The position numbers and the translations under genes were made by a program. The notes below the pieces were generated by a model. It searched no databases. It saw only the letters and a program-made list of their open reading frames with translations, and had not been told where the DNA came from. A DNA stretch of 61,764 nucleotides, the filler included, from Sluysia triapertura (taxonomy: Eukaryota): NCBI GenBank assembly GCA_046118255.1. It is 5 parts of 5 records of this genome, joined end to end, with 100 filler letters (N's around TTAATTAATTAA, not from the genome) between each part and the next. Parts side by side here need not be neighbours in the genome. Positions count along the whole stretch, not along the records: positions 35,417 to 48,153 come from JBJNIA010085028.1; 4 more parts are not named here. One strand, written 5' to 3'. This document shows positions 505-48,153 of the stretch, piece by piece (position 1 is the stretch's first letter; every line of letters starts with the position of its first letter).

Positions 505-2255
505 ACGATTGTTTAGTTTTGAGTGGTAATTTGGATATTAAATTTTTATGGCTCACAAGTCAACTAGTACCGTTTATAAAATCAAGCTTTCTGAATATGT
601 TTCAAGAAGATGTCATTTTAATTATGAGTCATTTACAAAAGCTGTACAATCCAAATGCCATAGAATTATTTTCTACATTGCTTCCTTGCTGTCTATCCTT
701 GACCACCTACAGTTTCACTAAACTTGATTCTATGAAATCATTGAAAAACAGAAACTTTCATAAAAATTCCTGGTCCGGCTTAGTATCTAAAAATCAAATT
801 TATCAACTACACAAAACTGACAAATGGAATTACATTTGTGTTTCACCAGGTGCTGAACAAAAAGCATTTCTTGACATTTTAATTGATCGATTCATTATCC
901 CTTCTATTGATGAAATGCACAAATTCACTGATTTAGTGCGATCGAACAATGATCGAATCAAATTCGAACCTTATCAGTTTCAGTCGATTTGTGATCAACT
1001 AACAGTTATTTCAGTTTGTTTAATTAATGAACAATTTTTTGTTGACAATCAAGAATGTTATCTATTTCCAGACCAATCAAAGAGCGCTTTTGAAATAATT
1101 GATCCAGTTGAATTTCGACAAAGTCGAGTCAAAAATACATCAGAAAAACAAAATCCAAAAATAACTGATTTACTAATGAAAATTCATTGCAGTGTCTATC
1201 AAGCATTGCAAGCCATCGCTGAATTTATCAATCAACCAAATCACGACTTATCTAATCTTCCGATAATCGTTAGCGATTTATATCATTTGTTTAACAATAT
1301 ACCATCTATTTTTTGTGTTAGATTCAATCCTAGAAGTTGTGATTCAAAAGAATTTCTTGATCGCCGTTTTTCGTCTTTTATCGATCCAATGGTTATACAT
1401 AAAACTAACACACCATATAATTGGATTGTAATGCTTCATTGGATGTTTACTAATTGTTGTTATGAAAATAAATTTCCAATGACATTGGAAATTCGCAAAT
1501 TAATCGATTTATTACTACCTATGGTGTACAATTCAAGTCAAATTTTACGTGATAACTCCATTTCAGCATTATTTAATATAACTAATTACTTTCTTAATGC
1601 TGAACATTATATCATTGATCAATGTTTTCGAATAGTCGATTTGAAACAATCAACAAGCTCGTCAGGTTTAGATGAACACACACATAATGGTATTGGCCAT
1701 TTGATCAGTAAAATATTAAAAAATCACTCGAATGCTTTTGAAAGTATGAATTTTATGTATAAAACTATTGCTATTTTTGTTAATTTGACTAAATCACAGC
1801 ATATTGAACAACGAACCAATCATAATTTTACAAATAAACTTTTTTCTTCATTAGTATATTTATTGACTTCATTTAAAGTAGCTCCAATTGAATTAGTTTC
1901 TGCAAATGATTGCGAAACTAATCAACAATACGTTGATAAATTACGTGAAACAACCGTACTACGTACTGAAGAATTCGGTTATTTGATTAATAATACTAAA
2001 AATGAAAGAACAGTTGATATGGTTACTAAACGCCGGCAGTTATATTATTGGTGCATTGATTATTCTATATCATTGTTTTTTGATTCAAAATTTGTCGACA
2101 ATAACGAATCTGATTTGATGGGTTTTGTATTGAAAAATAAGAATACTTGGCAAAGCACTTTACAGATTTCTATTATTTTACCTATACATCCAGAATTGCC
2201 GATTTTGTTGAAATATTTGAAATTGTTTTTTTTGACATTATTTAGTCCATCTAAG
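505..2255 (+). CDS. PSME4: Proteasome activator complex subunit 4 (PA200/Blm10), large internal exon
   Basis: Long ORF bounded by ttag| (503-504) and aag|gttagt (2256). Segments SPGAEQKAFLDILIDRFIIP...QLTVISVCL and IRKLIDLLLPMVYNSSQILRDNSISALF resemble PA200 [20 protein letters not shown]...QSLTIVHNCL and [25 protein letters not shown]. Confidence 0.8.
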
Positions 2256-2869
2256 GTTAGTCAGTTAATCGAAGTGTGTTTAAAATTATTTTCAGCACAT
2301 TTATAACAACAAATCTCAGAAGAAATTTTATAATTTTATATTATTTTAAATTGCATTGGTAAAGAAATATTTTATTCTTCTGTGTTGCTTTTTTGTTAAT
2401 GTCGCATTATAATCTTTAATGACTTAACGTTTTCTGATTGGTCGTTGTAGTTTTTAAAGGTAACACTTGTTTTATTATATCTTAAAATAATTACAACTGA
2501 ACGATTTTCAGGAGTTACACAATTTAATAATTTTAACTACTTACACTTTTATTGATATTCGGTGTAAATTTTTGAAAGGAAGTATTAGAATAATTATTTA
2601 ATATTAATTGTATCTTAAGCACTCTTCTATACAGGAATCAAGTATAATAGGTCATTACTATAATTTTTATTGGTTATCAGTTAGGTGCAATAGGTGCTCC
2701 CACACAGGGCCGACAAATGAATACATATGCTCCCACCGAAAATATATGTATGCTGACGATATTCTTATAATCGAATTTACTGTTTGGTTTTTATTTTATA
2801 TAACTTTATAAACATGCACACTGTTTATTTATTGTTTATTTGTGCTATAGGGGGCTAGTTGCGGTACTG

Positions 2870-3400
2870 ATGTGGAAATATATACTGAATTTGAAATGAA
2901 TAACATTATTCAAAGAACGAAAGAATTAGTATCTGAATTGAGAAATGGTTTAGAAATAAATACTTGAAAATCAATGAAGAAAAGTCAGAATTGTAGGTGG
3001 TAAGATGTTGGAAGCGAAACTAAAAGTACTAAATATAGAATGCTATATGGTTTGAAAATGAATATGGAATAAAATATTAATTGTATTGTTAAAAAGTATA
3101 ACATATTAAAGAAAATATCAAATATTCGAAAATTTATTAATGAAGAAACAACTAAACTAAATGTTCATTCATTGATAACCAATAACATTGATTTTAATAA
3201 TGGTATATTGTACTAAATTCCGTATAGAAAATTTCAAAATTACAATTACTGATGAATCAATCAGCAAGATTAATTTTCCAAGTAAGAAGATCTTATATCT
3301 TAGGAATTACATTGGGTACCAGTAAAAACAAGCGTAGAATTCAAAATCGTGACAACTTAAGAAAGCTTACATTATGGAAGTCCTGAATATCTCTTGGTAA
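2870..3400 (+). repeat. dispersed repeat (decayed TE) copy, homologous to 39290-39625
   Basis: Shared collinear blocks atatactgaatttgaaat, aaatattaattgtatt, gtagaattc.aaatc and ctgaatatctctt occur in both copies. Confidence 0.7.
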
Positions 3401-3532
3401 TGAAAGAATTCGGAAACCAAAATGAATGTCATTAATGTATAATAATTTATACAGAATCCACAGTGATAGGTTTATATACTATTTGTTTCAAAAATGTACA
3501 ACCAGCTACCAGAGAATGTTAAATTATTGTAA

Positions 3533-3612
3533 GGAAATATTATAGTGAATGCTTTATTTTAAGCTCTTTTACAATAGATATTAGTGCACTATAAATTAAT
3601 ATGTTATTATTA
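3533..3612 (+). repeat. short dispersed repeat, 3'-end-like, copy 1 of 3
   Basis: gaaatattatagtgaatg.tttattttaag...tagatat.ag.gca.tataaattaat is also found at 11891-11980 and 61636-61764. Confidence 0.75.
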
Positions 3613-4144
3613 ATATTATCTTTGTTGAAAAAAGTTTAGCTAATTAAAATCTTATTGCATAACTAATAGCTGTCAATCTCTTGATCAAACTGATTTATTC
3701 ATTGACGAGCCTTCCGATATTGTCGTGAATGAGACGCTTATTACCAGAAAATCTGGCGAGTCTAAATTACTCGCCACAATTATAACCATAAAATCATTAT
3801 CAATTAAAATAAAGTACTAAAGATAATCGTACTTTAACACATAAAGGTTCAGCATGCATTAATGCATAATTGTACTGCTATTGCTAAACCGCCGGCCATG
3901 CATTTTTGCACTCTGTAACTGAATTTCTGGTTGTCTAAATCTTTACTAAGCGAATGTGTCATAAGTTTACACTGGTTTTTCTTTAACATGTTAAATTTTT
4001 AAAATTCGTAAAATATCATCAGGTATTTACGCAGCAGTAAAATAAGTGTTAAGAAACTAAATTTTAAAATTAAATTTATGCATAAAGCTCAAAATTTTAT
4101 ATATTATAAATATTTAAAAAATGACGAAAAATCTTTGAATTCAG

Positions 4145-4628
4145 GAACTTAGTAATCAATCGTGTAATCAAATCAATATAATAGCATGGATATTGCGCGG
4201 CAAAACACCATTATCTTACATTACCAAAAACGATTTGTGTAAACTAACAAATCAAGATAATTATCCATTAATCGAAATTAACAATCCTGGTCCGAGATTG
4301 GATAATCAGTTTTTAGTAATCGATAAAGACAGTGATTATTGGTCAGATTATTGCAATCAAATTTATCCGGCTAATTTATTTTATGGTTATTTAGGATGGC
4401 CAGAAAAGATAAAAGCCCGAAAAATATGTCCTGGAAATAATAAAAATAATGTAACAAAACAGATGTTATCAGCAGTATCAACAATAAAAGATGGAGACAG
4501 TGAAGCGTGCTGGAATTTATTGTGTCGAGTATTCGAATCGAAATCATTTCACAATCGATTACATGATTTCTTGTTTGATCTTGGTAGCCAATTTTTGAGA
4601 GAGGATGAAATGCTACAATTGAGTCAGT
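4145..4628 (+). CDS. PSME4: PSME4/PA200 exon
   Basis: The acceptor tcag| at 4143-4144 is in phase 0, matching the previous exon. GPRLDNQFLVID...FYGYLGWPEKI matches PA200 GDRPDNHWLHYD...HWGYYTWPKNM. Donor t|gtattt is phase 1. Confidence 0.8.
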
Positions 4629-5649
4629 GTATTTATTTTTCTAAATATATTTAACTATCACTTAAGTTGTGAAATTGGATTCACCTTTGCAAAGACAGTT
4701 TTTATTACTATGCTCTGCATAATAGACCATTCGGTTGCCCGAACTGTGAAAAAATAATTATAAATATTTAATCAAATAACTTTACATATAATTTGAGGAA
4801 TTTTATATACCTTTATGATACCTAAATTTCATTCTCTTGAAATATTTGTAATTCAGTCTGCATTTCATAATTTAGGAATTAATATAGGTTAATTTAAAGT
4901 GATATCATAGGTCACTAAGAGAATTTTTTACTATTCTCGAATTACATGTTTGATAACACTAAAATTTTGAGGAAATAAGTGAAGTGCATCTAGATTTTAG
5001 AAATTTAGAAATAGAAAAATCGTAATCGAAGTTGTACCACATGCATAGTTTATTATTTAACGTTTTTAAATATTTTTGAAGATTTACGAAATATTCGCCA
5101 CCTTGCCTAATCGATTAAATCATGTTAAATCGTTCGAGCTCGAATTTTCAATTTGTTTTAAAAAGAAAATACAAAGACCTAGATTCCCATGAAATTTATT
5201 AAATTGATAATTTATTATTTAGATTAAACTATAGAAATCCTATAATGGATTCTATGTATGCACAATTTTTAAAAATTACATATGACACATCTTACTCGAA
5301 ATAATATAAATTCAATGTTATCATAGTTATCCACTATCACTATAAGTTTTTCATAAAGGAGATAACATACTCGCACAAACAAATATTCAATTAAATAAAT
5401 TACTTTGTACAGCGTACACTTAGAAAATATAAATTTCATTGAAGGAAAACCGTGTTTTCGAAACGACAAAAGAAAATATGAATTTAGTAATTAATTTTTC
5501 ATTTCAGTCCGGTTATGTAGACATAAAATTTATCTATTATGGTGATATTTGTTAAGAATATCCAAGTTATCAATTAATATGATAACACTGAACACGAATG
5601 TATTTTGATATTCGATATTATTAAGCTTTATACAAAATTGTAATTATAG

Positions 5650-5834
5650 ATTCTTCAAAAAAGAACAAGAAATATTTAACATGTGATCATTTAATGTACA
5701 ATTCGGAGGTTTCTTCTACATTTCCATTAGACCATCTCATTTGTACCATGTTGCTTTGTATCGGTCCAGAAAAAGGTTTGCCAGTGGTATTGAAGTTGTA
5801 CAATGATCTGATGTTAAATCAAGAAGTTAACAAT
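5650..5834 (+). CDS. PSME4: probable further PSME4 exon (not in ORF track)
   Basis: The acceptor tag| at 5648-5649 has a phase-1 start compatible with the previous exon. It reads ...HLICTMLLCIGPEKGLPVVLKLYNDLM (cf. PA200 FDDAFLPVLKPHLEHLV). Donor is gttagt at 5835. Confidence 0.6.
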
Positions 5835-6627
5835 GTTAGTTATTGAATTTCATAAAATTATTGAAGATTTCTTTAATGATTTAGAATCTTTGTTGGGTCG
5901 TTTGCGCAAAAAGATTTAACTACAAAATTATTGGAAATACTCTTGCTGTTTTCATATTTATTATTAAATAACAAATCAAATAATTAAACTACGTAATAGA
6001 GAAATAGTAGCGTACCAAATTTGTATTTCCATACGATAAACTAATAAATCTTGATTAAAAATGTGGATCAATCATGTAATTGTTCTTCATAGAAGTAATT
6101 TTGTCTATTGTAACTTAAATTCACTAAAACTGTTGTTTGTTTCTAGAACAAAAGTGTTGAGAAAATATCATTTAAATATAATTTTTATTTGTAATATATT
6201 AACACCGATTTTAATTTAAGATTTTACATTTTCATAAATTTATATGACCATCCTAGATCTTGTTCTAAAAATAACAATATAAACATTTATTATGACAAGA
6301 GGAGGCTTAAGAGTAGACTGTTAGGAGAGCCAAAACCATAAGTGTAATGAATTCTGTTAGAGACTATTAATGGGAAAATGTAATATTTTTGTATTCAGTA
6401 TTGTCTTACGGTGATTGAACTTATTTTGTGTAAAGAAGAATCTTGCGCTATCTATGTTAAAGCTATGGATATATTTGATGTTATAATTGTAAAGTTTAAC
6501 CTTGTAAGTTTTAATATTTTTACTGAATTTAAATGAATCTTTATGTAGTATTATTTTTATGTGGCACCGAAGGCGTTATGTGAGGCGTAATCCATGTATC
6601 ATAATGAAAGCATATAGGGAATGTTTC

Positions 6628-35416: not shown

Positions 35417-35973
35417 TTAATTATGTGAAATAAAAAAAACGATTATTTATAACCTTTTTCTTTAATAAAAAACGCGCGTTAAGGGGTTAAATATGACAAG
35501 TTTCATCCCATACTTTCTATCAATTTTTGTTTTTATTTATTTTGACATTGACTGCATTTTTCGCGATATTTCTTTCTTAGTTTAAGATTACAAAGGTATT
35601 TAATTTAATTTTATATTAAATTATAAAAAATTAATTTTTCAAAATTATTCTCATTATTAATAATAAAAATTTAAAAAATATAATTAAAATGTAATTAAAA
35701 TTACAATATTTAAAATTGAAATAAGTAATTACTGCAAACAAATAGTAAAAAAATTTGTTTTTATATTTAGTTTTTGATAATAATACTAACAATTTATATT
35801 TTTAAAACAACTGCTTTCATTTCATTTTACATAAAATTACATATGATTATAAATTCATGTGGTATTGTTTTTAAATAAAATAATTTAATATAATATAATA
35901 AACATAATTATGAAATGTCGCCTTATGCTAATTAATATATTTTGTATTTTATTACTTATACCTTTTTTGTTAG

Positions 35974-36480
35974 ATCTCAAATTAATTTCGTCTCCAGCTC
36001 AAGAATGTGACTGGTGCAGTCGATTCAACCAAGAATCAGACATATCATCTGTATCAGCAGCTTCAGATACTATTTTTAGTCAGTCGAATGATTATTTAAT
36101 AGATTGTGATATGCTAGAACACCGTATTCAGCTGGTGGGTACTGTAATGCGTAATGTTGCCTTGGATACCACTTTATCAACAAATACCACCAGTGTCTCC
36201 TCAATAATAAATCAAATTACTAATTCTTCGGTACCATCCTCTTCAATATTATCGTCTGCTATGATAATGACAAATCGGTTGTCAGCAGTCTTGACTCAAA
36301 ATCAACAAATGATGCGTTTCATTATATTATGCTGTTATTCGATAAAACCACCTATACGGCAGATTGGTCTTGAATTGATTGCACTTTTAAGATTTCCAGT
36401 TGTAGGAATCTTGAAAGAAATTTTGCGACAACTTTTACCAGAATTAATCGACAGTGACGATAGATTTGATCGATTAAGAG
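35974..36480 (+). CDS. ARID2: ARID2/BAF200 (PBAF subunit) internal exon
   Basis: Acceptor ttttgttag| and donor g|gttaat. HRIQLVGTVMRNVALD...NQQMMRFIILCCYS...IRQIGLELI...DSDDRFDRLRG matches ARID2 QRVLQIAVILRNLSFE...NRTCLRFLLLSAHS...LRQLGLDTL...MSRDRFLKMRG, with a Ser/Thr-rich insertion. Confidence 0.85.
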
Positions 36481-37862
36481 GTTAATTCAACAATTTTAGG
36501 ATTTAATAGTATAGTGAAAATTACTGAAAATAAATATCTAAATACATAAAAATGATAATAAAGAAAATAATAATAATAATCTAAAAAGAACACTTGAAAG
36601 AAAAAATAGTAATAAAAAGAAAAAGAAAAACTACCTATTATTTTCTTCCTCTGCAAATCTAAAAATATTTATATTAATAATTTTTGTATTAGTGTTATCA
36701 AAAATTTTATGTAAAATACTTACTGCATTTTGGGCATAAGCCAAATTATTATAATTACGGGAAAGTAGCCAGAAAATCTGTGTAAATTGAAGATAAATAG
36801 TAAGAGTTACACAAAACAAAAAGCAACTTTCTATAGTTACATTCAATTATTATCTAGATCATTTTCCCTGTTATTTCATTATTCATTAACCAATTTAATT
36901 AACAATCAAGATATATCCATTTATAAAATCTGTGCATTTATCGTGTTTAAGTTGTTTAAGAGATGCAATGCACTTAAAATCTCTTCTCAATGTTGCGCTA
37001 TTTTTACTATGATAGTGATAAATTCAGTTTAAAATTAATTATTACAATTTAGATCCTAAATCTAAATTGATTTTATATTATAAACTAATTCAAAATACTC
37101 ATAACGGAATAGTTAATATCAGTAACTTGATTTAATTACACAATAGTAAGTTTTTAATTCTACTTGCGCTTATATTATTAGTGAACTTGTGTTTCTACTT
37201 TTGATTTAATTACGTATATATTAATTAAAACGTTGACTTATTCTGTTTTGAGTAGTAGAATCTTTATTTGGTAGCACACGAAGTAAGAACTCATAATTGT
37301 TGAATATTTAAAGTTTCTTCGACTATTGGTAACTGTGCTCGGTGAAATTTACTGAACTTATTGATGTCAGAATAAGTTTTAAAAATACTTATTTTAAAAC
37401 GTTATCCTTCAATCTACATAAAAAATTAATGTGCCTTGTAAGTGCTTGTAACATGTATTAATGTTAGAAATTGAAATGAGAATTATTTAGTACTTGAATC
37501 TCTTAAATTAAGATAACTAATTCAAATCACAATACTTTTTTATCATTGTTTCTTCATCGCTCTTATTATCAGCTTAAGGCCTTACAAAGCTATGTAACTA
37601 TATTTTAATAGGTAATTGACCCAATAAAAAACAAACAACAAAAATAACGAAAAAACGAATTAATCTAAAAAGCTTCTGGACCGTTTATTTGTGCTTATTT
37701 TTCTGAAATAACCATTTAATTCATCGTACACGATGTTTGATTTAACGAAACTTAATACAACTGTATTGTATTGCTTTCAATTGTCTTAAAACAATTCGAA
37801 ATATCTCATTCCATGTTTGATCTTTTTGACCAACATATTCAGCTATTTCTCGAATATTTTTA

Positions 37863-38330
37863 TCAAGATAAACATTGAATTTGGCTAAAGTTTTTAATAT
37901 ACTTTTTTATGATTTTAACAATTATCTTAAAATCAAATTTATTAACGATATGTTTAGGATTAAGGCCTTTAAAACTTATATAAAACTTGATGTAGTTTAT
38001 AACTTTTGCACTTTTCATAATTTTGTTTACAATATTTTTAGGCTTAAGGCCTTTAAAAAAATTTATAAAACTTAACCCAAACAATACAATTAAATTAACT
38101 AGTAAATTTATATTAATCAAACTAGGAACTAAAATAAAATAAATAATAAACTAAAATAATAAACTAAAAGCTGCACTGCCTACAATTGTACCAGGAAATA
38201 ATTCATCATTATTTTCATTTCCTACCAATATTCTATCACATACAACTGATACACCAACACAGGTGAAATGAAGTAAAATTAATAAGATAATAATTTATAT
38301 ACCATAATTTTCAATAGGATCAGAATCACA
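37863..38330 (-). pseudogene. degenerate STT3-derived membrane-protein fragment
   Basis: One frame with two stops reads ...VVCDRILVGNENNDELF...ININLLVNLIVLFGLSFINFFKGLKP. It parallels LSRSTSRNYGNES...INLVASLNVLIICSLLIISGLKP of the 45.5-46.2 kb copy. The GLKP block is locally duplicated (GLNP). Confidence 0.45.
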
Positions 38331-39289
38331 TTTCGGATAAAGTTTAATAATGAAATCATATTTACAGTGTTATTCAGGAATGATATTTAATCTTATATAT
38401 TTTATTGTAAAATTTGATTCTTTGTTTCCTATTTATATTTCTTGTTAACTTCAATTTGTAGCTAACGCCGTTAGTACCTTGAACCTTATTTGATTTAGGT
38501 GCTCCTTTAAGAAATATAATATAGAACTTTATATTATGTTGAAGCATTAATAATAATATTTGGCATTTAACAAAAATAATGTCATTTTCACAACGATTTC
38601 TTTTATATTTACCTTATGATGTTAAATTACTCATAGATAATATTGCTCTTGGTGATAAATCAGATTTAAAGACAATTGTGCACATTGAACATCAATCATC
38701 TGTAAAATTCTTTAGATTATCAGGTGACGGATTTTTACTTTGATTAATCTAACCTAATTCAAAAGCTTTTCTATTATTTAAATTAGAATTAAATTTTAAT
38801 ATTATTTCATACGATTTTGAATTCGGCTTTCTAATAACAGAAAATCCTGGATGTTTTGTTCTTTTTGAGTTAACATACTATAACATCTACTCGAACAATA
38901 ATATTTGCTTTAAAATCTTGTTTCTCAGTAATTAATAAAGTAATATTAATAAATTATAGACGTGTTTCTTGTACAACCATGATATTCGGGTAATTGACAG
39001 TTCACTTGAAATGGAGTTATTAAATGTAGCACTGATACTAATAGATTAAAATATTTTATTTTTATATCGTTAGTAAAAATAATTATGACAATAAATAATG
39101 TTAATTATAAATGTGAATAATAATAATAAATAGAGTAATATTAAAAATAATAGTAACAGTAAGTAATAGGAATGATTAAAACAATAATTGTTATAACAAA
39201 AATAATAATAAAAATCATAAAAATATCCTACTTTCATTTGTAGGTAGGTAATTGTTTTAAAAGATTAATTTTTTAGAATAATAATAATT

Positions 39290-39625
39290 TAGAATCAGAT
39301 ATACAAATATATACTGAATTTGAAATTATTAAAATAGAAAACACTATTAAAAGTATAGAAAAACTAATAATTGAATTGATAAATTATTTTAGAATAAATA
39401 TTTGAACGTAATTGTACAAAAGTAAAAGTAGCCACAATGCTAAAATAAATGAATCAAAGTTAATTGTAAGTAGTAATATACTATAAACTGTATGGATTAA
39501 TACAGAAGAAAATATTAATTGTATTATCAAAGATTGAAAGTAGCAATAACTGCAAGAGTAGAATTCGAAATCAGGATGATTATCTATAACTGTTACGTTA
39601 CGAAAGATCTGAATATCTCTTAAAG
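39290..39625 (+). repeat. dispersed repeat copy homologous to 2870-3400
   Basis: Collinear shared blocks atatactgaatttgaaat ... gtagaattcgaaatc ... ctgaatatctctt. Confidence 0.7.
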
Positions 39626-40039
39626 ATGATATAACAATTTATGCACAATAAAATGAAGTAGAAGTAGCAGCATTAAAAATACTTATATTAATAATAATAG
39701 TGATAAAATGCGAGTATCAATAAAATGTAAACGTGGGGAGGAAGAACAAATAAAACATTGTAACGGCAACCACAAAATTATTATAACGATAGTTATTACT
39801 ATTACGATAATAGTTAATATTATTATTATGATAATAATAATTGTGAAATTATAGTAATTATAAATTATTACGACTGCGTTTATGTTTTGTATGAATTGAG
39901 TAATTTGTTTATGTAAGAAGTGTTGATTTGTAGGTGTTTGTGATTATTGTGAATTGTTTTTTTCATTAAATTTACTAAAATGATTGTTTTTTCAGCTTCA
40001 ACTCAATTTTTTGTCGATAATAGAACGCAATATTTAGGC

Positions 40040-40190
40040 ATAATTGTTAATTCATCAATATTTTTGGCAACTGATGCACTTTTGGTTTTATTATTTAATC
40101 CAATGTGGCATAAATGCCATAGTATCATTGATATATTAATGACCATCAGAATATTCTTTCATTAGCATTTGTGCGTATTTACAAGCACTG
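40040..40190 (-). mobile_element. possible LTR-retrotransposon integrase zinc-binding (H2C2) remnant
   Basis: YAQMLMKEYSDGH*YINDTMAFMPHWIK**NQKCISCQKY resembles the H..H...T.......W......C..CQ layout. Confidence 0.35.
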
Positions 40191-43179
40191 TAAAACACAA
40201 TATTTTCAATTAAATTAAGTATTTTTTAATAACTAATATTTATAGAAGGATGATTATTTTCTAAAATATTAATTTCACTATGATATACGCATTTATTTCT
40301 TCAATTAGATCTTGTAAAATATCATTTATTCAAGTACCTATGATATTTTATATCATTTGTATTGATATAGATTTTTTTATTAATTTTTAAATAATTGAAA
40401 ATATTATAGCCGTAATAGTAATAATAATAAATACAAATAGGTAATAAATAATAAATATAACTGTTTCCTTAAAGAATCATAAGTAGCTAATGATAAAATT
40501 AGTGAGTTCGTTTGCGAGTCAGGACTTTAGCAATTAAGGGCTCGTCCGCAAGATTTAGATGATCAGAAGTAAAGATACAAGGTACTATTAACAATGTAAT
40601 ATTTATTACTTTATCAGTGTATAATGCTAGTAAAGGCTTAATTTTTATTCAACAACTAAATTGAAGGATTAATCTCGTTTGAGTCTAGTAAGACTCGTTA
40701 ATGATTTATACCCTCATATTAATGATTAATTAATTTAATTTATGATTTTATGATCCTGTCTTAAAAAATATCTGAAAATGATAGTTTATCACATTTAAAC
40801 CGATGTTGGAGAAAGCAATTAACTAGTGATTAATTTTATAGAAATAAAATTGTATATGTCATTTCCCTTCAATTTATATTCTCGTTTTAAAAGAGATTTA
40901 CAAGTGTGCACAGATTGTTAGTCTTTTTTGGGGAAAATTATTATTAATCAACAACATTCGTAATAAATATTGATGATTACATTTTGGTAAATATGTTATA
41001 ATATTCAATAAATTCAGCTGAAAAAAGTAACTACAATAGTTATTTTAAGTTAAATTTTACCGCACTTATTAAATGTGCTTAAACTTATGAAAAAACAAAC
41101 TGATTTAATGAATCGTTTATAGGGATTAATGAGTGACTAATGTGGTTTTCATCTGTATATGATTTTAGAAAAACAAATAGATGAGGTATCCCAAAATGTT
41201 GTAAAATAATTGGTTTTGGGAGTTAAACTTTATTAATATTTACAATATCTTCAATTTATGATTTAATTAGACAATGAATAAAATAATGAAAATTTTATTG
41301 TTTTTTGGAAATCAGTAGTTAGAATTTGTCTAAAAAATGATGTTGTTTTTAATGCATACAGCACTACATATAGTTGATTTTAGTACTAATGTACTCTTAT
41401 TTTATTATGAAATATCTAGGCTGTTAAGCCTCATTGTTGTATTTATTATTATTAATATTGATGTTATTTTTATTAAAATGGAATTATTATTTTTATTATT
41501 GTTTTATTTATTTTTTATTATTAATTGAAAATAATATAATTATCATAATAATTAACATTTACAGATTATTATCATTGTTATTTTTTATAATTTTTATTAC
41601 AGTAACCTGGACATAACTGCAAAATATTTTAAAGTTCGATTATTTTGTAAAAATTTAAGTTTCATCTTATTTTGATTTATTTTGTGTTTTTTGTATCTTA
41701 GTTACTTTTCGTATCAGTTAAAACTTTCCTTATGTATTCTTTTGTTAATTTAATGTAAATTTATTCTGAGGTTTTAATCAGTACTTAACTCTGATGTAAG
41801 AAATGTAAGTGCAAAATTTTAATGGGTAATTTATATTTTCGTATTTTATTTCTCAAAACCAAATAATTAAGTAAAACTAAATGCTAAGAAAACTTTATTA
41901 ATAACAGCAAAATAATTCGTACAATATCGATTAAATAATTAAAAAGAAAATAATTTATATCACACGTGATTAGATTTTAGGTCTTTGATTTAATTTGTAA
42001 AAATTTTAATTTTACAAAAACCAAGGACCATAAATTTCAAGTCAAATATGTGCTAGTGTCTTATTGATAATATTGTAATTCGAATGATTCAAATCAAATA
42101 TGTTGATTAATTCAAATCAAATATAACAAATATGACACATACTTCAAATCATATATATTCAATGTCTTCTGATTTTGTGTCTCTGTCTCTCCATTTGTTT
42201 TTATAGTAAAATCCTCTATATATTAGATCCATATTATTCAGCCAATTTTTACTATATAACACGCATAAAATACTAATACATTATAGTATTATGAATTTTA
42301 ATTTAACTATTCGTTTATACATAACATATTGTGTGGCTTTTAATTTTAATTTCTATACTGTAGCTAAGATCATAATTTATTTTTATTTAATCTATTTTTT
42401 GGTACAAATTAATTATTTAGATAGCTACAATTTTACTAAGATTTATTTTTGCATATAACACGTCTCGATTTATTTTTAGTTTATTACAACAGTACATAAT
42501 CAAATAAATCAATTTCTATAAACTGAAAAGGAAATATAAATTCCAATTTCTTAAAAATTCCAAATAGCTGGTTAATGTATATTCAGTACATTCTCCAGTA
42601 CGATTGTCGATTAACCACGTATACAATTCAACCAAAAATTTTTAAACTTTCGCGCGAACTAGTTAACTCTCTTTTCTTGTATAATTATTTTATTTTACCT
42701 CACTATTTATATCCTACTTCCATAATAAATCCATTAAGAATAAATTAAAAATTTGTTTTCGAAATTCCATTAAAATTGAAAATTTACATTAAAGATTCAT
42801 TTAGTTATTAATTTAGAAATTCATTAAAATTTTTTTTGTGATACATTAAATAATTTGTAAGTTAAATATTTTTATAATGCATTAAATATCCATTAAATAA
42901 ATGAATATACATTAAACTAATTTATGTATTTTCCTTTTGTTATTATTTTTACAAAATTATGTTATTTCTTTTTAATTACTTCTAATTAACCTAACCTAAC
43001 TTAACCCTTGATTATTATATCAAAGAATCGTTAATAGGCAATTTACAGGCCCCATTTAAGAAAAAGTGAGTAAGTAGTTACTGTTATTATGTCTTTGTGT
43101 TATGCAATAATAATTTAAGTAATTATTTTTTTGGGTTTAATTCTGTCTTATGTAATAAACACATGAATTTGAATAATAT

Positions 43180-44260
43180 TAATCTTTATTTCAATATTCA
43201 CACGGCTTAAGCCATTGGAAACTTTAAATAAAATTTTAAAATTTTATTCTTTATTATATTAAGAATCCTTTGTCTAATTAAATGTTCGGTACCAGGCTTA
43301 TTATAAGAGAAATGTGTAGTTTCGTTAAGTCCAATTAAAGCAATTTCTACTTCGAAAAATGGATGATAATCTAAATTTGAATTTGAACCTTTATAAACTA
43401 TTGGTTTTGGTGTTATTTTAGTATAAAAGTTTCAATTTGTTTTGTCACTAATAGCTTTTATTATCGAATATAAATTTTCCTTATGATTATTATTCAGTAC
43501 AGTATAGCAAGATCGAAAATAAAGCAGTTATGTGTAATTAAAGGTAATATCTTTGATTGCATTTAAATGTTTATACTTAGTGCAAGTCATATTTTGCGTA
43601 TGATCTTTTTAAATTTAATAAGAATTTTAATGATTCCTTATTAGTTTGGTCAGTTTTATTTAGTAGGATATTCGGTATTCATTTGATTAATTCTATTCGA
43701 CGAAATGCTTAATATAATTTAATTGATTTAAACTTAATTCATTTAAAGCTGCCCTAGGGATTGTCAAAGCATGTTTCTAAAATTTTAAGGATGTTTAAAC
43801 TAAAATAATAAGCAAAATAACAAATTAGAAACTCAATTTTATAAGATCTGCAATAAAGAAAAATTTAACAATAATAACGAAGAGATTTGTAATTCTTATT
43901 TCACTCAATTTCTTTTCATATGTTTTAGATGTTTTGAATTAATTTTCTTCTAATATATTAACAAGAGATCTTAATAAATAAATGGTGTTTTAGACGGTAT
44001 TAATAAGTTCATATGAGTATATTCTAATTTTTTAAATTCATCATAATTAGGTGTTGTATGATAACCAAAATGATGCATTTGATCAAAAAATTATTAGTAA
44101 AGTACAGTTTAATGGCTTATAAATTTTTTATAATTTATGTTTAAATTGATGATAGAAATCTGGATGTAGATTTTTTTTAATCACATAATGAAATTTTATA
44201 ATTATGTAGCATAGAATCGTACCATTTAATAAAGATTACTATACGTGGTAAATGATTTCA
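43180..44260 (-). mobile_element. highly decayed Gypsy-like pol remnant (RNase H end and integrase)
   Basis: Scattered motifs in the expected order: IKWYDSMLHNYKI..HPDFLS, HFGYHTT, HPFFEVEIALIGL (cf. PF..V.IDL.GPL), KFPMA. Confidence 0.5.
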
Positions 44261-45044
44261 AACGAATATTGGCTGCTTGATAACTTTGTATTTATATCGA
44301 TTCATTTTTATTAAAGTAATTTTACGCCACTACCAATAAATAATTATAATCTACTTACTATTGTAAATAGGTAATAATAACTAATAAAAATAAAATAATA
44401 AGCATGCTATAATGAGCAAATTTTAAATTTTACGAATACAATAAAAGCATACTAGAGTAAATAGTACCACTTTAGTTTACAATTATAATAAAAACATAGT
44501 TTATATGATATTACTAAATTACATTTACTATATCATATTAATATTAACTCTTCTCTAATATTAACTTTTTGAAGAACTTTTTACTGCTTACTGAATTTGG
44601 AATTTTTTCAATACACATTCTGATTTATCTTACAAACTTTTGATGTAAATTTTCTTTTAATTTATAATATTTTGTTTATTCAATTATATTTTTACGTGTT
44701 GTACGTATTTAGATTTTTTAGACTATTTAGATGTGGTGACTCACATCTTTACACAAAATTTTAATACATTAAAATAAACTAAAAACCATATTTTAGATCA
44801 AAAAGCATTAAATTCATATTTTAAATTTAAATATAACAATAAACTAAATGGAATTTCTTTTAACACCTTTACCTTTGCTAATACTTTCCTTCGACACTCC
44901 TTCATATTTTTTTATCTTTTATGTTTACCCATGTGGTGCAATTTAAAAATTAATTACTGGTGCTTCCAACAAAAATAAAAATCAATAAGCAAACGACATT
45001 ACACAAAACAAGATCATTTTAAGTCAGTATCTAGTTTTTCAGCA

Positions 45045-45665
45045 TTAAAGAAAAGTCGACTCAAGACAGTCAAACACCAAGAAGCAAGTAAACACTTGAA
45101 TGAAAGTGAAAACAGAGAGTTGGAGCAGTATAATGATGAGCTTTGTAATAACGACAAAATAGGAAATATTGAAATTATTGATAACCAAAACAAAGTGGAG
45201 AAAGTTCGGTATAATGATTATAAGAAGTATGAACACTCCGAAAAAGCATATCGAGACTAAAGAAGTCATATTTACATGATAGGAAATAATCAAATGGATA
45301 ACAATACTAATTATATAAAATGTATTATAGAAGCCATGATTCAAAAGATCAAAATATGATAATGAGTTGATAAAACAACAAAATGTCGCAAAAGTGAATA
45401 CCTTAATGGGAAATGAATCTACAGTAGATGTTCAACTAAATACATTTAAGGCAATATCTACAAGAAATGTTACAAGGAATTATAAGAGAAATAAAATTAT
45501 CAACTCGATCAATAATATCAAGAAAGATTATTAAATACTTTAAGAGAATATAATCAAAATTTTTGTATTAACAAAACTGATAGTTTAAGAAAAACATTGT
45601 TGAAAAGATGAAGAGATGACTTTAATGAAAAGGAAATATTTGGTAAATATTTAAAACACAGAAAT

Positions 45666-45742
<77 letters not shown>

Positions 45743-46219
45743 GTATTTTAGTTTATACAACATTACTTTAATTAAACAAATCGTAATTAAAATAAAACTA
45801 TTTGAATCAATTCTATTTCTATTTACAAACATGGGCTTAAGACCCGAAATGATTAAAAGGGAACATATAATTAGAACATTTAATGAAGCGACAAGATTGA
45901 TTAACATCATAATATTCATGACAAAGTATAGTAGATATACTGTTTTTAATAAAAATAAAATAAACACTAAACACTGAACAGACAAAAATAAATAACCAGA
46001 ATCAAAAGTCTTAGTGCATACATAAAATGTTAGAAGCATAGCAAAAATAGCTACACTTTCATTGCCATAATTTCTAGATGTACTTCGACTTAAATGACCA
46101 GCGACAAAAAGAATGCAAATTATTGCAACAACTATAGTACATTTTTTTATAGTTGTATCATAAATATTCTCACATTTACTAAGACATTTATCATTATTTG
46201 ACGTAGTACTGTTACTCAA
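45045..46219 (-). pseudogene. STT3: divergent STT3 (oligosaccharyltransferase catalytic subunit)-derived transmembrane region
   Basis: VAGHLSRSTSRNYGNESVAIFAMLLTFYVCTKTFDSG...INL matches STT3 [37 protein letters not shown]...INL. YNTFYIIS...TSLVSICFFGVFILL matches YSTFYIVG...TSEHMAAAGVFALL. DNE has become GNE, no WWDYG domain follows, and a microsatellite interrupts it. Confidence 0.8.
45669..45741. repeat. (AAT)n-(ATT)n compound microsatellite, self-complementary
   Basis: An aat run switches to an att run, which explains the poly-I/poly-L in the ORF track. Confidence 0.95.
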
Positions 46220-46889
46220 ATTGAAAGATTTAATTGAACATTTGATGGCACCAATCTATCTCTGCACGTGAAACTGTTCGGAATAAAATGTATTGTCCGA
46301 TAATACGAAGTTGCTGATAATCTAAATGGAACGATCCACAAGCGTTCTATATCAGTAACACATTTCAATAAACGAATAAGGTTCTGAAAAATAGTTAAAG
46401 GTAAATTTGCTATCAAAATAAAAAGGAAGTAAGTCAATGATATAATATTCCGAATGAACTTTAGTGATTTTAATATTACTTGAAGGGCGGACATACCACT
46501 TTTAACTGTTGACACATTTGTATTACATTCAGTTCTTTTTATCATTGATTCAAGTCTTCCACTTTCAACGGAGTCGCCATAACTTAATTTTCTTAATATA
46601 TCAGCATTAGCAATGATTTCATCAATTTCATGTACAGTTGGATTTTCTCCTACCAACTGAAGTATAAGACGAAATTCAAATTTATCAATTACTCCATTTT
46701 TATCATTATCAAATAACATAAAAGCATCTCTGTAATCTAGAACATTGATATTTTGATAAATGAAAGTTTCAGATACTAACATTTTATTTCCTTATCAGTT
46801 AAATTATATTTTTTCTTTATAATCATCAACTTTTCGTCAGTTAAATCCTAAAAATCTATCTTTCTATATTATAAGTAACTTACACTCAT
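46216..46889 (-). CDS. calmodulin-like EF-hand gene (exons 46889-46884, 46847-46781, 46736-), truncated in EF2 and running into unrelated sequence
   Basis: ATGAGT|gtaagt, with 36-nt and 44-nt GT-AG introns, gives MSDLTDEKLMIIKKKYNLTDKEIKYYRDAFMLFDNDKNGVIDKFEFRLILQLVGENPTVHEIDEIIANADI (cf. CaM [21 protein letters not shown]...LGQNPTEAELQDMINEVDA). Similarity stops at about 46595. Confidence 0.75.
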
Positions 46890-46991
46890 TTAATTAAAGT
46901 AATTTATGTTCAACAAATGAACCATAACATTATTGATTACACACAAAAATACTATAAATAGAAAATCAGAATTCCATATATTTATTATTCA

Positions 46992-47763
46992 TTAACGATT
47001 TGATTTTGCTACTCTTTCCAATTCATCCTTCTTTTTAATTGCATACGAATTTGAGCTTCCTTTAGCAGCATTAATCAGTTCATCACTTAGACACTCAGCA
47101 ATTGTTTTCCCATTTTTCATAGCTGCTTCTCTAGCCCCAGTACATAATAAGGCTATAGCTTTATTGACTCTTCTCAACGGAGAAACATCCACGGCTTGGC
47201 GCTTTACTGTACCACCGCGCCCAATCCTTGTTGAATCTTCACGCATACCAGAATTTGAAATAGCTTTTACAAGAACTTGAATTGGATTCTAAAATTAAAT
47301 AAATTAGAAGCAAACAGAAAAATAATTTAAATTAGCATAAAAATTTAAATCGTCAGAAGCATTAAAAAATCACATTATCATACGAACGAGACATATTTCA
47401 TCATTTAAGCTATATTATGATTAGCAAAATAAAATAAAAATAACCTCGCCACTTAACAAACTAATAATTTGAAAGGATTGTTTAATTATATTTATTGCCT
47501 TTATTTTCTTACCGTTGTTACGACCATGCATCATTAAAGAACAAACGAATCTTTCGATGATAGGACATTGAGCTTTTCTAAATCTTTTTATTTGATACCT
47601 TCCTGCAGAATGGGGAATCAATTTAGCATATTTCTTGTTGTAATTTATATAATCCTATGTATACCGTAAAAAAAAATAAAAATTATACCGTTAAAGATAA
47701 GTCATAAGTTTGAACTTCTTCTGGGTTCCATTCTCCAAATAAGTTTACTTCAGTTGTTTCCAT
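46992..47763 (-). CDS. RPS5: 40S ribosomal protein S5 (uS7), exons 47763-47689, 47654-47445, 47288-46992
   Basis: [12 protein letters not shown]...|DYI...[22 protein letters not shown]...[10 protein letters not shown]...SGE|NPIQVL...[27 protein letters not shown]...[13 protein letters not shown]. The GT-AG introns are 34 and 156 nt, both phase 0. Confidence 0.98.
47347..47408 (-). ncRNA. intronic C/D-box snoRNA guiding 18S rRNA 2'-O-methylation
   Basis: Box C ATGATGA (47404-47398), guide GTCTCGTTCGT (47392-47382), D' ATGA (47381-47378), a C'-like TGTGATT, and box D CTGA (47356-47353) about 64 nt from the 3' splice site. The guide is complementary to conserved 18S ACGAACGAGAC. Confidence 0.88.
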
Positions 47764-48153
47764 TTCGAAAATTTAACAAAGTATATTATATGATTATTAA
47801 AACAAAGTAATGACAAAAAAATAATTGATAAAAATTGATAAATCATGAGATTAAAAAAATTCTTATTTTTGTAAATATTGTGTCATCTTTAAATTAATAT
47901 GTACAAATTAAGCACTAATTTTAAAAATTAAGTGCGTGTTGAAATATATTAGTGGTTACTATAAATTAAAAATTGATTTCCTTATAAAATACATGTATTT
48001 TCTAATTAACACTAGATTTACCAGGAATTTTCCATACCTATTTATACCTATTTTTTTTAATATTATTTAATTAACGAAAAAATAAAAACACTTGCGAAAT
48101 TAGTGCATTTAGTTTGTGTGGTAAAAGTCAAATATTGGTTTTTAAAATAAATA

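Follow-up and report, generated by a model that had tools for sequence, protein, structure and literature searches.

The locus and its open frames

The window, a stretch of 61,764 nt joined from five parts of the genome of Sluysia triapertura, includes one piece of 12.7 kb (35417-48153, from JBJNIA010085028.1), and this piece, which is free of gaps, is the DNA analysed here. Its G+C content is 16-34% (500-nt windows). The piece carries a complete RPS5 gene, an open frame with a calmodulin-like start behind it and an STT3-like open frame that overlaps the end of that second frame (Table 1).

The introns of RPS5 are 34 and 156 nt long, with donors GTATAA and GTTATT, and its TAA stop is followed directly by TGA. 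When its exons were searched singly, the last one matched animal ribosomes best (167 bits), then fungi and plants (150-157 bits) and then protists, and RPS5 scored as an ordinary animal protein that is not unusually divergent. On this evidence the DNA most likely comes from an animal, one whose genome is compact and very AT-rich. In the open frame behind it, the first 60 residues (46602-46782) are calmodulin-like (E 2e-14 against PDB; E 2e-6 for the Pfam EF-hand family) and hold the one canonical EF loop of the piece, at 46675-46710, which lacks a partner loop. For the remaining 128 residues our searches found no relatives; a membrane helix is predicted at residues about 110-141, and the frame ends 37 nt inside the STT3-like frame. 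Because a calmodulin-like part is followed by a part without relatives and then by an STT3-like part, the local ORFs chain pieces of unrelated genes. A candidate intron between the EF-hand part and the multi-copy block (46496-46384) was rejected, its phase leading straight into a stop.

About 8.5% of codons in the surrounding DNA are stops, yet the STT3-like frame is open for 233. Its first 36 and last ~92 codons show no similarity to STT3. The tail of the frame (45557-45832) consists of a microsatellite and unrelated sequence and scored a z of about 0 against shuffles; the microsatellite, the two arms of which (45670-45705 and 45707-45742) are 92% complementary, encodes a poly-Ile/poly-Leu tail that lengthens the apparent STT3-like ORF.

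Table 1. Positions of the features discussed, counted along the window
Feature	Position	Strand	Basis or remark
Local duplication of 84-nt period holding two 12-mer copies (37956-67 and 38040-51)	37935-38058	minus	repeat search (D7)
Open frame, 233 codons stop to stop, longest of 35417-48153	45557-46255	minus	ORF scan
Compound microsatellite (AAT)9(TAT)17, self-complementary	45669-45747		follows the 12-mer after 86 nt (minus-strand direction)
Multi-copy block, ~0.6 kb	45782-46383		many diverged X1 contigs; borders approximate, within about 30 nt
12-mer GGTCTTAAGCCC, translating as G-L-K-P	45833-45844	minus	3' end of similarity; 32 variant contigs read GGCC
STT3-derived segment, ~86-93 codons, similar to STT3A residues about 146-235	45869-46147	minus	phmmer, tblastn, profile, shuffles
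Degenerate catalytic-loop motif S-R-S-T-S-R-N-Y-G-N-E	46058-46090	minus	sequence
Upstream open frame, 191 codons, in another frame	46219-46791	minus	ATG at 46782, 210 nt past the end of RPS5
Homopolymer with one base fewer here	46240-46243	minus	71% of other versions' depth has one more base
RPS5 (uS7), complete, 193 codons	46992-47763	minus	exons 47763-47689, 47654-47445 and 47288-46995, TAA stop

The second longest open frame of the piece lies apart from these features, on the plus strand at 35889-36482 (198 codons), where G+C is highest (0.33). Its N-terminus is hydrophobic and resembles a signal peptide, and it matched no Pfam family and no exact record elsewhere.

Extent of the STT3-derived segment

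The single significant STT3 match within 35417-48153 was the segment at 45869-46147. Residues 31-112 of ORF 45554-46219 aligned with residues 146-227 of STT3A from the mammalian complexes in PDB (phmmer, E 8e-8); five STT3 proteins matched 45890-46147 with E values of 3e-11 to 6e-9, everything else falling at E >= 0.1 (tblastn); and our own STT3 profile, built from the ten longest database hits and run without filters against 506 ORFs, gave E 4e-15 for 45869-46141 and E 1.2 for the runner-up. Composition-preserving shuffles yielded z values of 14-19 for the segment. Comparison of ORF residues 1-129 with 1.84 billion representative proteins returned 69 hits (best E 1.9e-6, identity 25-46%), none of them a closer relative, and all ten of the hits that were scanned with Pfam proved to be canonical STT3. 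The Pfam STT3 model PF02516 did not match ORF 45554-46219 even at E 1 (hmmscan).

The original prediction had claimed STT3 homology for the whole of 45045-46219. That claim holds for 45869-46147, with E values down to 4e-15, and fails for the wider span. A hydrophobic ORF at 45048-45431 (minus strand) that had been counted as STT3 aligned to the next STT3 helices at tblastn E 2-3.5 and z 0.7-2.0, and it was rejected. Two upstream extensions were likewise rejected: in frame A one suggestive 12-residue match was reached by 35 of 500 shuffles, and in frame C an R-I-I-G word was not significant. AT-richness and the TAA then TGA at the end of RPS5 had prompted a trial of the ciliate genetic code, under which tblastn (code 6) found no longer homology; this code was rejected also because RPS5 stops with TAA at its conserved C-terminus.

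STT3, the catalytic subunit of oligosaccharyltransferase in N-glycosylation, has 13 transmembrane helices in solved structures, and its D-x-E loop carries metal ligands, the Asp binding the catalytic metal. The segment described here resembles STT3 (PF02516; human STT3A, PDB 6S7O; mammalian STT3A, 6FTJ) over residues about 146-235, which we take to comprise three to four transmembrane helices and the D-x-E metal-site loop. Shared with STT3 are a loop S-R-S-x-x-x-x-Y-[D/G]-N-E and the helix that follows it, A-I-F-A-M-L-L-T-F-Y. Hydropathy scanning found two clear helices in the segment, the other hydrophobic runs being unrelated or encoded by the microsatellite. As had been read, the loop motif is SRSTSRNYGNE, ending in Y-G-N-E: a Gly codon (GGC, 46064-66) stands in place of that for the metal-binding Asp, and Glu is still encoded at 46058-60. 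Unlike STT3, the sequence covers ~90 of ~700 residues, belongs to a multi-copy block and has, in this copy, Gly for Asp.

What surrounds this core in STT3 did not turn up. Upstream, no frame gave a significant match to external loop 1, which bears the first catalytic Asp, or to the N-terminal helices (tblastn, profile, shuffles). The luminal WWDYG domain, noted as missing in the original prediction, is indeed absent throughout 35417-48153 when searched by tblastn with STT3 (P0054, residues 1-640) under both the standard and the ciliate code; external loop 5 is absent as well, and tblastn and profile searches detected no other STT3 part in the piece. With external loop 5, the loop of the first catalytic Asp and the luminal peptide-binding domain all lacking, the STT3-like stretch cannot be a complete enzyme; it is predicted from its sequence to have no glycosylation activity and would contribute at most hydrophobic helices to a chimeric ORF. 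Relatives of such a short STT3 form were not found among proteins of 121-387 residues, among the 1.84 billion representatives, or by word search, exact look-ups and the ESM Atlas, and a literature search on amplified STT3 fragments gave no match.

Among the further pieces of the same family that had been proposed on account of their GLKP- or FLKGL-type endings, those at 37.9-38.3 kb lie within 35417-48153, and for them the proposal did not survive. As STT3 relatives these pieces scored E 0.45 (across a stop) to 3 and z -0.3 to 2.0. The duplication at 37.9-38.1 kb encodes F-K-G-L-K-P and F-K-G-L-N-P on the minus strand, and between the 38.0-kb piece and the 3' end of the STT3-like frame there is a weak 37-residue similarity that was reached by 4 of 300 shuffles. 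Both also contain the 12-mer GGYCTTAAKCCY, which occurs three times in 35417-48153 (0.06 expected). The endings are therefore what a short and highly abundant DNA repeat encodes, and they are no sign of STT3 kinship. The region of the 12-mer contains no significant hairpin, and shuffled sequence folds as well as it does (z -0.4). A suspected resemblance of 38154-38294 to Na/Ca exchangers was borne out by no tool.

Versions of the block in run X1

Run X1, the sole public run of the organism, is kept as contigs and may be the assembly's own source. Its contigs were aligned to 44000-46950 at 80% likeness, which placed 1555 contigs on 2951 nt, 1413 of them less than 99% alike. Evidence for a multi-copy state was taken from the number of distinct versions rather than from word depth.

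Among the 40 variant sites shown of 149, the 18 best supported within 45813-46349 comprised 16 with 5-32 distinct variant contigs and two with four, and the diverged contigs were 81-99% alike to this copy, likeness over the block ranging from under 90% to above 99%. A 319-nt contig differed at 40 positions over 207 nt and a 142-nt contig at 24, both without gaps; against the two longest abundant variant contigs listed, the block copy is 17-19% diverged. In contrast, contigs match the neighbouring stretches 44146-44846 and 44893-45659 perfectly, with a single such contig on 45178-45659, no variant among those listed falls in 45170-45659, and the AT-rich unique neighbours of the block draw no comparable diverged contigs. 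Summed word depth, which adds up contigs, gives no copy numbers and cannot rank parts of a stretch, was 2000-6200 on the block, 12849 at the 12-mer and 13-30 on these neighbours. Coverage of the block was very uneven, with subfamilies of near-identical contigs, and was greatest toward the minus-strand 3' end, reaching its maximum for the whole stretch at the 12-mer (45833-45844). Within 35417-48153 there is no second copy of the block, self-comparison having returned just background matches of 60-70% in AT-rich sequence.

The number of distinct versions makes the block a multi-copy sequence family in this genome, and its versions are probably many, of the order of a hundred. The central proposal of the original prediction, that an STT3 fragment has been amplified to many copies, is thus borne out by 4-32 distinct diverged contigs per site, as against single perfect contigs on the flanks.

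The other versions differ from this copy at informative positions. All 17 contigs that cover 46065 (100% of depth) have T for C there and so read GAC, Asp, in place of GGC, Gly. The loss of the catalytic acid is consequently private to this copy; the predicted loss is real here but is no trait of the family, which keeps Y-D-N-E. The base missing from the homopolymer at 46240 would, if present, join the upstream frame into the STT3-like frame or, in an alternative reading, let the third frame run into the upstream frame. In addition, the majority variant at 46217 removes the TGA (46216-18) that ends the upstream frame, and that at 46349 removes a TAG (46347-49) in the third frame, both stops lying in frames other than the STT3-like one. 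Since the majority variants restore the Asp, remove two stops and add the 46240 base, the copy studied here is a derived, damaged one. With these defects and its divergence from the abundant variants, it can hardly be called the best-preserved member of its family, as it had been.

Of the 11 differences listed within the STT3 frame, five are synonymous and most of the others conservative, and no stop arises from any of them; this synonymous share suggests a leaning towards coding constraint that is not significant (binomial p about 0.1). Upstream of about 46150, every one of six differences changes the residue when read in the open frame, and four of six are silent when read in a closed one. 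One contig (word depth 163) lacks the 98 nt of 46384-46481 and has two other letters instead, a net change of 96 nt that is in frame with the upstream ORF and removes exactly its predicted membrane helix. The idea that this version is a spliced form was discarded, as it is a DNA variant with two other letters at that place.

Origin of the multi-copy block

On balance, the copy is best regarded as a decayed member of a dispersed, lineage-specific family of repeats with a captured piece of STT3 as cargo, a reading that we hold with modest confidence. It is favoured because a short block stands in unique flanks, its coverage is uneven with a maximum at the 3' end, it falls into near-identical subfamilies, and the local ORF is chimeric. 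According to this scheme, the fragment would have been picked up once from the organism's own STT3 gene and multiplied inside a dispersed, non-autonomous repeat. The present copy may then have landed, or been duplicated, behind the calmodulin-like ORF 0.2 kb downstream of RPS5, where it would have drifted, accumulating the change of Asp to Gly, the base loss at 46240, the new stops in two other frames and the 17-19% divergence.

Three kinds of known system offer comparisons. Helitrons (in maize and bats) and Pack-MULEs (in rice) amplify fragments of host genes. Judged from general knowledge of these elements rather than by comparing their sequences, the block resembles such captures in being a piece of a housekeeping gene in many diverged, decaying copies and in having ORFs that chain unrelated gene pieces (calmodulin-like and STT3-like). 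Non-LTR retrotransposons make 5'-truncated retrocopies and families of processed pseudogenes. Reminiscent of these are a coverage maximum at the minus-strand 3' end (45833-45844), which is only a hint given that depth cannot rank parts, a shorter fragment at 38.0 kb that has just that 3' end in common, and a (TAA)n-type microsatellite 86 nt downstream. The STT3 paralogue arrays of trypanosomatids consist of a few full-length, catalytically active genes; they share with the present case the occurrence of more than two STT3-related sequences per genome and differ from it in that the sequences here are many short fragments without catalytic and peptide-binding parts.

Mobile-element hallmarks were looked for and not found at this copy. 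Helitrons begin with 5'-TC, end in CTRR-3', carry a GC-rich hairpin that lies 10-12 nt from the 3' end and insert between A and T. Neither such ends nor the hairpin occurred at the block borders, which are known within about 30 nt. No inverted or direct repeat of >= 10 nt connects 45740-45860 with 46350-46500, the best border match being an AT-only 9-mer, and an inverted-repeat search of 35417-48153 yielded pairs within microsatellites only. Unlike Helitrons and Pack-MULEs, the copy thus shows neither 5'-TC/CTRR-3' termini accompanied by a 3' hairpin nor TIRs flanked by a target-site duplication. Unlike non-LTR retrocopies, it lacks poly(A) as well as a target-site duplication, and an RT ORF is not found in its vicinity; transposase and Rep-helicase ORFs are also absent from 35417-48153. 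The termini that the original prediction had in mind (Helitron ends, TIRs, poly(A) with target-site duplications) were accordingly not found at the borders of this copy. An RNA family or a tRNA-derived SINE was rejected too, there being no Rfam or tRNA match.

This lack of hallmarks counts against repeat cargo and speaks for a different possibility, namely that the block belongs to a multigene family, lineage-specific and expressed, whose products are small membrane proteins made from STT3 helices, with D-x-E intact and perhaps an N-terminal EF-hand, and of which the present copy would be an inactivated member. Also in its favour are the other versions, which keep the Asp and are free of the stops and frameshift of this copy, the length of the open frame, the synonymous or mostly conservative differences, none of which creates a stop, and the in-frame indel of net 96 nt in another version. 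The open frame, these differences and the indel weigh against repeat cargo too. We nonetheless consider this family the less probable reading, although a serious one: the excess of synonymous changes is not significant, the differences upstream of 46150 single out no one reading frame, the block measures just ~0.6 kb between unique flanks, its very uneven coverage is what truncated repeat copies are expected to give, and no such proteins occur in any database searched. The stronger proposition, that the other copies (with Y-D-N-E kept and without defects) amount to a family of about a hundred or more small, expressed membrane proteins derived from the STT3 active-site helices, some perhaps behind an EF-hand, appears unlikely to us. 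If true, such a family would be a new class of STT3-derived pseudo-enzymes that might bind the lipid-linked donor or metal, or interfere with oligosaccharyltransferase, and a large family grown from the STT3 metal-binding core would represent an unexpected new use of the glycosyltransferase fold.

Tandem organization provides a further, distinctly improbable account, according to which the block is a monomer, or part of one, of a satellite array elsewhere and the copy studied here is a stray. That so short a block has a very large summed word depth would fit, as would the backward joints, typical of tandem arrays, in the neighbouring repeat at 44693-44890; on the other hand, no backward (end-to-start) joint is listed for 45782-46383 itself, and its versions differ by up to 19% and include many distinct variants. 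Still less credible is a single ordinary STT3 pseudogene whose apparent relatives reflect AT-rich hydrophobic bias. It is true that just one STT3-like segment of the piece is significant, that no other candidate passes the shuffle tests and that self-comparison reveals no second copy, but X1 contradicts this account by showing many diverged versions of the block, with dozens of contigs at 81-99% that carry consistent majority variants, unlike the AT-rich unique neighbours. Finally, an exon of a working, very divergent STT3 gene of the organism, although its open frame and good match around the catalytic loop would suit, is almost certainly wrong, because identity to canonical STT3 is just 30-42% over a stretch in which the STT3 proteins retrieved seem to differ little among themselves, and the adjoining RPS5 is ordinary. 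In addition, the metal-binding Asp has given way to Gly, neither the ~10 kb downstream nor the 2 kb upstream holds a further STT3 exon, and the block is multi-copy.

If the block is indeed repeat cargo, it would show cleanly how part of a housekeeping gene can be multiplied in an animal genome that is compact and very AT-rich. Gene finders would call spurious 'STT3-like' genes at such copies, inflating STT3 copy counts, and a family consensus could both date the capture and identify the carrier element.

Three other observations concern the DNA on the downstream side of the block. The short repeat at 44693-44890 has 72-95 variant contigs per site, the most on the stretch, and a summed word depth of up to 23400; backward joints run from 44871 to 44759 and from 44876 to 44797, which suggests that this repeat forms tandem arrays elsewhere in the genome, and it matched no tRNA or Rfam family. 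The G+C-richer interval 44979-45431 holds two overlapping frames, of 93 codons on the plus strand and 128 codons on the minus strand, neither of which has relatives and neither of which is favoured by the variant positions. At 45115-45169, a second version is present in X1, represented by one contig with eight transitions in 55 nt.
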